In this document: positions 28,272 to 62,573 of the stretch, one piece after another
Position numbering within the stretch: position 1 is the first letter of the stretch
How the letters are laid out: the number at the start of each line of letters is the position of its first letter
Assembly (NCBI RefSeq): GCF_033153115.1
Contig: NW_026889750.1
Coordinates: forward strand, 5,828,001 to 5,892,000
Source: Saccostrea echinata
Lineage: Eukaryota
Reading direction: 5' to 3'
DNA: 64,000 nt
Notes under the pieces: model-generated
What the model was told of the DNA's origin: nothing
Database searches by the model: none
The model's input: the letters and a program-made list of their open reading frames with translations, nothing else
Made by a program: the position numbers and the translations under genes

Positions 28272-28639
28272 TTAATTAAAACAAACATTCTTCAAGTGAT
28301 TCTCTAAAGATTCTCCTGTTCTAAGTCCCTTTCCACAACGAAAACACATAACAAAGCTTTTTTTGCTGTGTGAAAGCATGTGTTTTTTCAGGAAGCTTTG
28401 GTAAGGAAACATCTTGTTACAGGTTGGACACTTAAAGTTGGATTTTTGTCCATGTACAGCTGTTACATGATACTTCAGGGCGTACACAGAACTGAATTCA
28501 CGTCCACATTCCCAACAAAAATCCGGTTTTCCATGAAATTTCACTTCCTGAAGGTGTCTGTTGAAAGCAGACTCATTTAAAAACCGTTCCTTACAAACGA
28601 TGCACGATCTGTCCCTTACTGGCAGCTCTTCTCTTTTTT
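28272..28639 (-). CDS. Variable terminal exon 1 (most distal): 4 zinc fingers, last C2HC
   Basis: Acceptor tttttaattacag at 28640-28641, phase 1; own stop; paralogue of 30849-31237. Confidence 0.85.
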
Positions 28640-29169
28640 CTGTAATTAAAAATTGAAAGTGAATATTTTTGCAGTAAAATATATTTGATTGTAACAAATT
28701 ATAACTATCAAATTCTTTGAATCATTAATAGAGTTAATTAAAAATAAAAGTAAGTCACTAGCAACATGTGAAGTCTCATATGAATCTCCATTCGTACATA
28801 TGACCTATCCATTGCCACATAAAAGTTCATGTCAAATGAAACAAAAGAGTCTACTTTTGAGTAAAACATCAGTCATTTATTCGTTCTCATTCAATGCCTG
28901 GTGAGACAATATACCAATAGCTGTAAAAGTTAAGTACATTGCGGTGGTTTTAATTTCACAAATATATCTGTTCAAGTTAAAATGCTGTTTTACTGTTTTG
29001 TAACAGTAAAAAGAAGTAAAAAAAAGTATCATGTCATTTTTAAACTCTTTTAATAAAATGATGATCATATTTTGTCACATTTTATTGGAATGTCTATGAA
29101 GTGCCTGGTAAATAAAAGATCAACTTTTATGTCACTTAAAATACCTGTCTTTGTACAAACTTTATGATT

Positions 29170-29370
29170 TTATATCAGAAAATCTTACGCTGAATTGTCT
29201 ATGTTTTTTCACGTTTACTCGATTACGACAAGGGGCACACAGCGGCGGTGACTGGTCCAAGGGGGAATCTTACTCCTTCGTGGCACCTGCTCCCACCTCT
29301 GATATTTTTAGAGGTCCGTGTTTGCTCTGATCACAATTTGTAATTTGAGCTTGATCACTGTTCTTTATCT
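29170..29370 (+). mobile_element. Solo Penelope-like 3'-end fragment
   Basis: GGGGCACACAGCGGCGGTGACTGGTC...CCCACCTCTGATATTTTTAGAGGTCCGTGTTTGC. Confidence 0.7.
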
Positions 29371-30848
29371 TAATAATTTATGAATTAATTTCCCATTAAT
29401 AAGATGGGGACATTTTGGGGTGTCATGATTCATTTACCTAAAATAACCATAATCTGAATTTTAGCATATCCTCAAGAAGATCATTTTTTATCCGTAGTTC
29501 ATTCAAGGACATCAACATCTTTCCATATCATAAGTAGAAAAGGAGATGTAGAATAATGAAATTAAAAGTTTGGTATGTATTGTTTACAAACTTTAAACAA
29601 AATAAAGGAATCCTTCCAATAATTAACTTTTAAAATGTTAGTTTCCATACAATACACATGAAGACGCTTAAAACCAATTTCTTTCTTTGGCATCACTTGA
29701 CAAAAAAGAAGTTATCCTTTAAATGTCTATCTGTTCCATAGCAATAAATCGACAAGGAACATGAGAAATCTTTATGACACCTATCACAGGTTTGGCAGCA
29801 AATTTGCATGCATTTTTGTTTTGATTTGCTTTTTGGTCCAAATGGCTGTGTAAAGAAAATAAAATTTCACCGAAATTCAGATCTCTAAATATTCCTAAGT
29901 TGACAAGGATGGATGTCATCATATACGACTGAACAACACTGATATAACAGTAAAATAATATACTTGCATCAGATTTGCCTTTGCCACTCCTCACCAAACC
30001 TCCCAAAATTTGAATCGTTGAAAAAAGATAATAAGGATGAAGTGTTTTACACCAGTGTGTGTTTTTATTGAATTCAAAACTTTCAAAGATATTCATCAAT
30101 TTAAAGAATTTAATATGTAAAGTAAGATGAAGATTCTGAACATTCAATACACACTACTAGTATGTGACTCTCAATACACAAACTTCAATAATATACTTAA
30201 ACACAAACAGATTTCAAATATAAACTAAGATCATAATAATAACACAACCCTGGCTTTAAGAAGTACATCAACGAATACATAAAAGAAGCTGTTCTTTATC
30301 TTTAGGCTCTTTCACAAAACATTCATCAAAAATAAACTATAACTGTACATTATATACTCCCAGAGGACCTATGCCTCCGTGTATGAAAAATGCAGACATA
30401 TATCTAAAATACTCAAATATAGACCTTTGTTTTATACATGGCTTTTACTCAAGGTATAACAAAAAAGCACACCCTCTACATCTAATTTTAAAGATCCTGA
30501 AACGAGCGATTTGCATTGGAGTTTCATGAAAGCATTTTTTCTGGATCTCGATATTCTTCAAACTTTGGTCATTAAAGGTTTGATTGAATAGGCATGCTCA
30601 CAATCTAGGCGTATTAAGAAAAAGTCAAGAAAAGATGACAACAGGAAAGGAAGAAGGAAAGTAGAAAGATTGTCCCCTGAATACAAGTTTGTGCCGAGTA
30701 CAGTCTTAAATGTGGTACATTTTAGTGTATTCTCATATTTTATTCTCTACAACTATGCATTTTGCTGAAGTTGCCCAAACTGAAGATGACATACTACTTA
30801 AAGAGAATGAAAGAAAAGATAAACTGTTTGTGAGCTCATTTTTATTTT

Positions 30849-31237
30849 TTACTCAGAACTGCTTATTTTACAAACATTTTTCAAGTGGTACCCTAAAGAT
30901 TCCCTCGTTCTCAATGCCTTACCACAGCGACTACAAATGAACAAAGCCTTTTGGTTGTGTGAAAGTATGTGTTTTTTCAGGAAGCTTTGGTATGGAAACC
31001 TTTTGTGACAGATTGGACACTTGAAGTTGGATTGTTGTCCATGGACAGCTGTCACATGATACTTGAGGGCGTTCACAGAACTGAATTCACGTCCACATTC
31101 CCAACATAAATGAGGTTTTCCATGAAATTTCTCTTCAAGAAGGTGTCTCTTGAAAGCTGACTCGTTTAAAAACTGTTCCTTGCATACTATGCACGATCTG
31201 GTCTTTTTAGAGAAATCTTCCCCTCTCGTTTCAGAAA
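30849..31237 (-). CDS. Variable terminal exon 2: 4 zinc fingers, last C2HC
   Basis: Acceptor ctttctttttccag at 31238-31239, phase 1; own stop. Confidence 0.87.
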
Positions 31238-61467: not shown

Positions 61468-61678
61468 CTAAATTGATAACGAATATCGTATGTAATGATA
61501 TTTATTTTTTAAAAATAATGACTTAACAGTAACAACAAGTATAATAATCTTAAAGCCTTCATTAAAGACTTTCAAGACGTATGTACAACAGCAATATTTG
61601 TACACCAATTAACCTTAAAATTAACACAAATACGAAACACATATTGGAATCAGTTTTGTTATAGATTTTTCACTCTTG

Positions 61679-62040
61679 TTAATCCGTTTTCTTGCAAGAT
61701 AACTCCATGTGATTTTTCAGGTGATACTTGTGTTTAAACCCTAAGTTACAGTTTGGACAGTAAATCCTCTTTTGCAAGAAATGAATTGATTTAACATGCC
61801 TAATTGCAGTTCCTCTTTGAGAAAAGGTTTTTCCACATATTTTACACATGCTCCCCTTAAACCTTCCACTGTCAACTTTCACAACATTTTGGGTTATTTG
61901 AGGGGATGTGACTGGTTTAATGTGTGGTAATGGCAACATATTTTGTTGTGTTCTTATTTCAGATACTGCAGACAATGGGATGTTTATCACGGTAAAAGAG
62001 CTGGATCCCAAACTGCTCCCTAGGATACTGTTCTCTGGGC
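61679..62040 (-). CDS. Variable terminal exon 34: spacer + C2H2 + C2HC (type B, diverged)
   Basis: Acceptor tgtttttactgtag at 62041-62042, phase 1. Confidence 0.88.
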
Positions 62041-62239
62041 CTACAGTAAAAACAAAGGAATAGAACCTTAATTATTCACTTTCGCCAGTTATGATTTTAC
62101 TAAGAATACTCAAAGAATTTAAAACAAAGGCACAATGTCAATCTTATCCAGAGGTGAAGATTTTGTCATTTCCACCCTCAAGTGAAACATGAAACACGAC
62201 CTAACCAACACTTCAAAAGGGTTTGCCAAAAAAAATGTT

Positions 62240-62466
62240 CTATCCACGCACATGCTTCTGAAGATGCAGTTTTAAGTGATCACTTCTCTTAAAAGTTAAT
62301 TTACAAATCGAGCACATGTAAGGTCGGGCATCGGTGTGAGTGTTTAAATGTCTTGTCATATTGCTTTTGTAATAAGTTACAAATGAGCATTGTCTGCACT
62401 GAAGCATTTTGGGATCACTGGATGGTCCTTTTGTCACTTTGGAACTGCTCATCTCGGCAACAACCC
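62240..62466 (-). CDS. Variable terminal exon 35 (most proximal in window): 2 C2H2 fingers
   Basis: Acceptor tattttgtatgtag at 62467-62468, phase 1. Confidence 0.87.
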
Positions 62467-62573
62467 CTACATACAAAATAAAAAATAACCAATCAACCTT
62501 ATTACCTTAATCCCTTTAAAATTACAGAGTTCAATAAAGGCTGATGCCAGAGCAAAAATGTATTACCAATTCT

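Follow-up and report, generated by a model that had tools for sequence, protein, structure and literature searches.

The stretch analyzed here (the window) comprises 64 kb of the genome of the rock oyster Saccostrea echinata, positions 5828001 to 5892000 of contig NW_026889750.1 (C1) in an assembly of 923 Mb, and was scanned together with the next 100 kb rightward. It holds two N runs (9724-9926 and 17918-18054) and an array of minus-strand coding segments, most of them encoding C2H2 zinc fingers, whose host is the RefSeq gene LOC133184031, a minus-strand gene that is annotated as an uncharacterized protein and extends over ∼45 kb from its ATG to its last stop. An earlier reading of the window alone (the original prediction) had assigned the DNA to a probable mollusc, which as a bivalve S. 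echinata is, and had proposed that the segments are alternative last exons of a single gene. Here we set out the anatomy of this locus, the splice junctions that connect its parts, and its conservation among bivalves, and we weigh how it may work.

Array of terminal exons

In a stop-to-stop scan of all six frames of the window, 34 open frames with C2H2 fingers were found on the minus strand, all of them between 28272 and 62506, whereas the plus strand holds a single one, outside the array (7755-7979); left of the last segment, the same scan gave no minus-strand finger frame within the window. Together with a finger-less frame at 47460-47686, these make up 35 segments, numbered from E01 (rightmost) to E35 (Table 1), and the 35 minus-strand segments of the original prediction, each with its own stop, were in this way recovered mechanically. 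In fourteen exons, the frame has no methionine from its preceding stop up to the first finger; the prediction had spoken of several.

From the preceding in-frame stop to the first finger, each AG was given a crude, unsupervised acceptor score, namely, the pyrimidines in the 20 bases before it. A phase-1 AG is the top-scoring acceptor in 32 of the 34 finger frames (binomial P = 1.4e-13 at p = 1/3), and the two exceptions, settled by reading, also hold one: ttcgtag/GT at 38759 in E31 (the slash marks the splice border) and a weak taag/GT at 57189 in E10, which lies at the very first codon of its open frame. The claim that all segments open in phase 1 thus stands at 35 of 35, with E10 doubtful.

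TABLE 1 Exons of LOC133184031, from 5' to 3', and further features. Coordinates refer to the window; L003 is the sequence right of the window, in which position p equals window coordinate 64000+p. CDS, coding sequence; UTR, untranslated region; nt, nucleotides; aa, amino acids
Feature	Coordinates	Strand	Content	Further observations
Constant exon 1 CDS	L003:9343-9468	-	carries ATG	donor AAG/gtag, phase 0
Constant exon 2	L003:7931-9225	-		acceptor ttccag/GCC; donor AG/gtaacc, phase 2
Constant exon 3	L003:7526-7785	-	last base G	donor CAAG/gtgggt, phase 1
E00 (36th variable exon)	L003:4687-5060 (window-extended 68687-69060)	-		phase-1 AG at 69061; between exon 3 and E01
E01	62240..62466	-	2 C2H2 fingers	gtag/GG; 93% identical to S. 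cucullata isoform tail
E02	61679..62040	-	2 fingers, last C2HC	87.5% identical to S. cucullata tail
E03	61250..61467	-	2 fingers	RefSeq isoform X30; GT donor 20 nt past stop, ∼61229
E04	60584..60993	-	2 fingers	RefSeq isoform X2; acceptor also used by E03 3' UTR donor
E05	59593..59999	-	2 fingers	recent E04 duplicate, 99/135 residues identical
E06	59122..59360	-	2 fingers	71% identical to O. edulis tail
E07	58388..58608	-	2 fingers	ttag/GT phase-1 acceptor; internal donor ∼58452
E08	57973..58247	-	2 fingers	phase-1 acceptor; 69% identical, full length, to C. angulata/gigas tail
E09	57562..57800	-	2 fingers	exon-3 junction in RNA; 82% identical to O. edulis tail
E10	56926..57188	-	candidate terminal exon	weak AAG acceptor (taag/GT); paralogue of E12
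E11	56516..56760	-	2 fingers	RefSeq X21; 83% to O. edulis, 81% to C. gigas tails
E12	55090..55334	-	2 fingers	RefSeq isoform X22
E13	54608..54849	-	2 fingers	RefSeq X24; old E11 duplicate; own O. edulis orthologue, 74%
E14	54162..54430	-	2 fingers	RefSeq isoform X17
E15	53544..53785	-	2 fingers	acceptor score 20, best in array; 76% to O. edulis tail
E16	52929..53152	-	2 fingers	phase-1 acceptor; 73% to C. virginica tail
E17	52309..52538	-	2 fingers	phase-1 acceptor, score 20; 79% to O. edulis tail
E18	51782..52029	-	2 fingers	full length 96% to S. cucullata, 80% to O. edulis, 78% to C. virginica tails
E19	51276..51526	-	2 fingers	RefSeq isoform X19
E20	50707..50954	-	2 fingers	phase-1 acceptor; 91% O. 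edulis, 83% S. cucullata
E21	50047..50408	-	3-4 fingers	phase-1 acceptor; 87% to S. cucullata tail
E22	49327..49643	-	2-3 fingers	RefSeq isoform X14
E23	48852..49069	-	2 fingers	RefSeq isoform X31
E24	48498..48766	-	2 fingers	RefSeq isoform X18
E25	47460..47686	-	finger-less, 75 aa	RefSeq X28; 79% to C. gigas isoform tail
E26	46721..47097	-	3-4 fingers	phase-1 acceptor; 89% to S. cucullata tail
E27	45956..46278	-	3 fingers	RefSeq X13; front like E28, last finger like E26
E28	43583..43908	-	3 fingers	RefSeq isoform X12
E29	42804..43210	-	3-4 fingers	RefSeq isoform X3
E30	39166..39599	-	4 fingers	acag/GA phase-1 acceptor
E31	38364..38758	-	3-4 fingers	gtag/GT at 38759; 75% to O. edulis, 72% to C. 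virginica tails
E32	36666..36964	-	3 fingers	phase-1 acceptor; 60% to C. virginica tail
E33	34337..34719	-	3 fingers	RefSeq isoform X7; junction ...GAFQ/VYFLET
E34	30849..31237	-	3-4 fingers	ccag/TT phase-1 acceptor; E35 duplicate, 88/117 residues identical
E35	28272..28639	-	3-4 fingers	acag/AA phase-1 acceptor; last terminal exon of array
Interspersed repeat	62600..64000		>60 genome copies, 84-93% identity	in large E00-E01 intron, non-coding for the gene
Further BTB loci on C1	C1:21158627, C1:21145401, C1:24096315, C1:11469602, C1:31636687, C1:37967451		51-66% identity
Further BTB loci elsewhere	C14, C19, C20, C23		51-66% identity	thirteen further loci in all, with those on C1

Constant exons and BTB domain

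To the right of the window, where the original prediction had placed the constant 5' exons, a 447-codon minus-strand frame ∼9.5 kb past E01 matches the Pfam BTB profile PF00651 (E = 1.7e-8, profile positions 23-106 of 110). Reading the exon borders directly in the DNA sequence gave three constant exons, and the last of them ends in a phase-1 donor, again as had been foreseen. The BTB match sits in exon 2, with the N-terminal part of the domain coming from exon 1; at E up to 1, Pfam gave no match for exon 1 or exon 3. Together the three exons encode 560 amino acids, made up of an N-terminal BTB/POZ domain, probably of the dimeric ZBTB kind, a long linker rich in Ser and Pro, and an acidic motif also present in the paralogues. 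The final G of exon 3 and the GN that opens the variable exon form a glycine codon in most isoforms.

The N terminus of the BTB domain reads MSYQKMYMNQIYSSSTMSYLTNMWKNQLLCDAVI, without the FxLRWN motif of the arthropod TTK group. In a sequence search of PDB, the best matches were ZBTB17 fusions (4u2m, E = 1.6e-5), a weak similarity, followed by KLHL, KEAP1, and BCL6, all at E values of at least 0.008; no Drosophila TTK-type BTB is among the 60 best matches (E up to 10), and all matches below the first two are near noise. When two copies of residues 1-135 were modeled together, the BTB homodimer scored 0.82 and the best control 0.00, on a scale whose dimer mark is reached by 21 of 30 proteins solved as one-chain pairs and by none of the 23 single-chain structures; for eukaryotes the mark is reached by 17 of 29, and by only 1 of 7 without an older solved relative. 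Models from separate runs have at least 95% of their contacts in common, the predicted local distance difference test (pLDDT) of the partner is at least 89, and residues 2-9 of one copy, its N-terminal strand, contact residues 91-95 of the other. In the two-copy model, the N-terminal extension is therefore swapped between subunits, as in ZBTB-type BTBs, and the model supports a predicted homodimer that resembles known BTB dimers.

Splice junctions

A protein database search matched the exon-2 protein at 100% identity to isoform X7 of LOC133184031, and the 90% identity cluster of this protein holds 31 RefSeq isoforms, 15 of which were readable. All 15 begin with the 560-residue constant part, whose last residues are GQEGAFQ, and continue into a single window exon (E03, E04, E11-E14, E19, E22-E25, E27-E29, or E33), and their joints coincide with the phase-1 AG acceptors called here. 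The view that this is one gene with many isoforms agrees with these models, which number at least 31 with one alternative terminal exon each. Contrary to the original prediction, automated annotation has neither broken up nor overlooked the gene: RefSeq treats such loci as one multi-isoform gene in S. echinata as well as in other oysters, scallops, and mussels.

Sequencing runs provide junctions from RNA. In five of them, 0.75-0.76 of the words sampled from L003:7400-9600 are present. Exons make up the same share of this segment (1681 of 2201 bases), the value that RNA should give. Four runs, from two studies, were aligned to window positions 56500-62499, and here the contigs have loose ends at 57802 (E09) and 62468 (E01) in run X1 and at 61469 (E03) and 62042 (E02) in runs X1 and X3. 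All four share the consensus TGAAACGCTCCCTCCTGACCCAGCAT, the reverse complement of the end of exon 3, which within the 164 kb searched is placed solely at 71528 (window-extended coordinates), the 3' end of constant exon 3. Exon-3 letters thus stand at four different acceptors in RNA contigs, and the shared upstream donor for which the original prediction had proposed to look is present. Contigs of run X1 also stop matching exactly at the acceptors of E05 (60001) and E06 (59362), where 25 and 24 further letters follow.

These junctions bear on whether the array could be a set of separate zinc-finger genes with one exon each, clustered next to a BTB gene without being part of it, as dense same-strand finger frames with their own stops might suggest. 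Fourteen segments would then have no start before their first finger, and neither the phase-1 acceptors in 35 of 35 segments, nor the exon-3 letters fused to four of them in RNA contigs, nor the 15 RefSeq proteins that join the constant part would be expected; we give such a cluster practically no credence.

The original prediction had further held that no donors join the segments to each other, and this is mostly so, with two departures. A GT donor 20 nucleotides past the stop of E03 is joined to the E04 acceptor (61229 to 60992) in run X2, with matching loose ends in run X1; this splice lies past the E03 stop and so leaves the protein unchanged. E03 can thus serve as an internal exon, with E04 as 3' untranslated region. 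The second departure is found in one contig, where a cryptic GT donor inside E07 (∼58452) is joined to the E08 acceptor (58246). By count the E07-E08 join is in frame; the contig is single and of low depth, with only 30 letters on one side.

One contig of run X1 passes from exon 3 into E09 and then continues unspliced through E10 and E11 to 56500, which is the only RNA coverage of E10, and run-on contigs cross the inter-exon spacers at 56500-57802 and 56500-58072. From E01 to E26, the gap between a stop and the next acceptor is 85-600 nucleotides, and for nine exons the first AATAAA/ATTAAA lies beyond the next acceptor. The tight spacing, the position of these hexamers, and the E09-E11 run-on contig suggest that neighboring exons share or nest their 3' ends and that the isoform is set by the choice of acceptor.

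The junction letters in the RNA contigs fit cis- and trans-splicing alike, and the locus has the same architecture as loci at which trans-splicing is established (PMC1947980 and PMC13490949). The variable exons could therefore come from transcripts of their own and be trans-spliced to the constant ones, the mechanism used in mod(mdg4) and, in part, in lola. However, all 36 variable exons, including E00, share one strand and follow the donor downstream in linear order, no opposite-strand finger frames occur within the array, and the run-on contigs extend across the spacers, as they should if there is a single long primary transcript. With this co-linear layout, cis-splicing is sufficient, and we regard trans-splicing as very unlikely here.

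Variable ends and their duplication

All 34 finger exons match PF00096 in a Pfam search. Each encodes 2 to 4 C2H2 fingers, and the last two fingers can be aligned with seven invariant zinc ligands; the presence of this homologous last two-finger module in all 34 exons shows that they arose from one two-finger exon by tandem duplication. Recent duplicate pairs are E04/E05, E34/E35, E11/E13, E27/E28, E03/E06, and E10/E12. Among the 33 exons with at least two fingers, no two have the same residues at positions -1, 2, 3, and 6 of the helices in these fingers (33 distinct recognition signatures), and Arg(-1)/Asp(+2) occurs in the last finger of 20 of the 34 finger exons. E27 is seemingly chimeric, its first two thirds being E28-like and its last finger E26-like (window 43583-47097, minus strand), and the last finger of E28 matches that of E29. 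These mosaic matches indicate exchange between neighboring exons.

The two finger-less ends differ from this pattern. E00 encodes a CxxC...CxxC..C ribbon and shares 79.5% identity with the C-terminal tail of isoform X7 from S. cucullata. Its language-model (Atlas) features (0.93, with 195 shared with the piggyBac zinc-ribbon clusters PF13842/PF13843) point to a piggyBac-type zinc ribbon, while Pfam is silent at E up to 1; in precomputed Pfam matches, PF13842 stands in place of fingers on some related bivalve isoform tails. E25 has no Pfam match at E up to 1, and its Atlas scores, of at most 0.82, are uninformative.

Conservation and gene family

Comparison of tails, on the basis of ∼15 readable isoforms per species, gave full-length, C-terminal, one-to-one matches at 60-96% identity in other oysters (S. 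cucullata, Ostrea edulis, Crassostrea virginica, and C. gigas/angulata) for at least 25 window exons. The old duplicates E11 and E13 have a separate Ostrea orthologue each, and the constant part is 79-94% identical across oysters. RefSeq isoform numbers are comparable in five oyster species and reach X36 in Mizuhopecten and X50 in Mytilus californianus.

Among the ∼15 isoforms sampled per species, E07, E30, E33, E34, and E35 have no close orthologue. This observation, together with the weak acceptor of E10, for which there is no junction evidence, and with the fact that the contigs do not allow a ranking by depth, would fit a situation in which functional proteins come from less than half of the exons, many of the others being splicing noise or decaying duplicates that annotation turned into isoforms. 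Against this stand the intact frames of all 34 finger exons, whose last two fingers retain the full set of seven zinc ligands, the at least 25 orthologous tails in other genera, the separate orthologues of E11 and E13, and the comparable isoform numbers, which were modeled independently in the five oyster species. We consider it unlikely that functional exons are the minority.

The gene belongs to a family. The S. echinata genome has 14 loci with this BTB type, that is, thirteen besides the present one (Table 1), and same-strand finger frames lie downstream of the BTB in all three further loci that were checked; at the locus at C1:21.158 Mb, there are 13 such frames within 12 kb, mostly in phase 1. 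Only 86 relatives were found at E values of at most 1e-10 among 1.84 billion representative proteins, and every named relative looked up is from a bivalve (oysters, pearl oyster, ark clam, scallops, mussels, and unionids). Orthologues or paralogues are LOC134268279 in S. cucullata, LOC125645899 in O. edulis, LOC144625423 in C. virginica, LOC105334027 in C. gigas, and LOC127704711 in M. californianus. These RefSeq genes have X31 to X50 isoforms, and individual tails are shared one-to-one with LOC133184031; they are database models only, under misleading automatic names (myoneurin-like, BCL6-like, and PRDM2).

Surrounding sequence

Two reverse-transcriptase-like open frames, similar to each other, lie at 2059-2667 and 26612-27379, both on the minus strand, the second directly downstream of E35. 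They contain ...IPMGTNCAPLLADLFL...YIDDVL... and are probably retroelement remnants. Another, paralogous pair, at 5776-6162 and 22272-22634 (both minus strand), has a signal-peptide-like start followed by a coiled-coil-like stretch and, to judge from these features, may belong, as first exons, to duplicated genes for secreted proteins. Contigs of runs X2 and X5 touch 57536-57557 and 59083-59100, with 39 foreign letters between and long unrelated loose ends, which is probably due to an unrelated repeat or to a structural difference in the sample.

Proposed mechanism and its implications

Taken together, our data make it highly likely that the locus is one gene in which a constant BTB front is combined with one of ∼36 alternative last exons. 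The anatomy, the common donor, the junctions, and the conservation of single exons across oyster genera were observed directly. In this model, the exon-3 donor, which lies after the first base (G) of a codon, is spliced to one of at least 36 terminal exons situated 2.3 to 43 kb downstream, each of which starts in phase 1 and brings its own stop. The 36 ends are the 34 C2H2 finger exons, the putative piggyBac-type zinc ribbon, and a 75-residue module without a known domain, and the product would be ∼36 transcription factor isoforms with a common dimerizing front and different DNA-binding ends. Judged by their sequences, these isoforms may bind different DNA sites, and they may pair via the BTB domain into homo- and heterodimers. 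Splicing presumably occurs in cis, and in the tightly packed part of the array the isoform would be set mainly by acceptor choice, with 3' ends shared by neighbors.

Several points weigh against this reading or narrow it. (i) Within the material reached, direct junction evidence in S. echinata covers ∼19 to 21 of the 36 exons, and the RefSeq models, which derive from RNA-seq themselves, may lack independence from the runs used here. (ii) E10, with only a weak AAG acceptor and no junction evidence, is doubtful. (iii) An unspliced contig of 2 kb in one run could stem from pre-mRNA or from DNA, and contigs give neither expression levels nor transcript ends. (iv) The idea of shared 3' ends is drawn from hexamer positions and one run-on contig. 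(v) The BTB dimer pass may stem from the model's memory of solved BTB dimers.

As to how the system came about, we lean toward a scenario in which a bivalve generator in the style of lola arose independently from a non-TTK, ZBTB-like BTB gene, became a bivalve-restricted family, and captured transposon modules. The family would then count 14 loci in S. echinata, its mussel genes would reach up to ∼50 isoforms each, and the piggyBac zinc ribbon would be one of the captured modules. If this is true, several hundred BTB transcription factor isoforms per genome would be invisible to gene counts. In practice, the RefSeq names of these genes mislead, and bivalve transcription factor censuses that proceed by gene and not by isoform will overlook this diversity. 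A larger conserved array on a different BTB subtype in bivalves suggests that the design arose more than once. A second, independent system would also help in understanding why dimerizing BTB factors favor this design, how one acceptor among dozens is picked, and how finger specificity diversifies by tandem exon duplication.

Comparison with known systems

BTB fronts with arrays of alternative DNA-binding ends are textbook insect cases and are tied to an arthropod-specific BTB subtype. The variable ends of mod(mdg4) are FLYWCH modules, and vertebrate ZBTB genes encode one fixed finger array. In Drosophila lola, a common BTB region is spliced to unique C-terminal exons, mostly of the zinc-finger type, giving at least 20 isoforms (PMC1947980). 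The mod(mdg4) gene has more than 30 alternative 3' exons, one of which follows the common BTB exons in each mRNA, and all of these mRNAs arise by trans-splicing (PMC13490949). The original prediction had called the oyster locus lola/mod(mdg4)-like, which is right for the architecture, since a constant BTB, a shared donor, and different, predicted DNA-binding modules were all found, but not for family membership. We rejected an assignment to the TTK group: the oyster N terminus lacks FxLRWN, and a published search did not find this motif in Mollusca (PMC11426971).

Full-text literature searches yielded no paper describing such a locus outside arthropods, in line with the statement of the original prediction that no description from molluscs was known. 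A 2025 survey of C. gigas transcription factors reports BTB clusters and alternative terminators, not this architecture (PMC12111275). Since the records are already in RefSeq under unrelated automatic names, the locus is apparently undescribed rather than undiscovered.

With vertebrate ZBTB proteins such as ZBTB17/Miz-1, BCL6, and ZBTB18, the oyster protein shares an N-terminal BTB with an N-terminal extension, C-terminal C2H2 fingers, and, by model prediction, a strand-swapped BTB homodimer, although the sequence similarity is weak and there is no orthology. As in mod(mdg4), the oyster gene joins common BTB exons to one of many alternative 3' exons; unlike in mod(mdg4), the ends are mostly C2H2 fingers, and all exons are co-linear on one strand. 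The likeness to lola extends further, to a constant BTB front with many unique last exons and to variable exons most of which, in both genes, encode a two-finger module. Yet the oyster gene has ∼36 variable exons, a non-TTK BTB, a bivalve host, and 14 loci in its genome, and its layout can be explained without trans-splicing; it is probably a convergent variant of the lola design.

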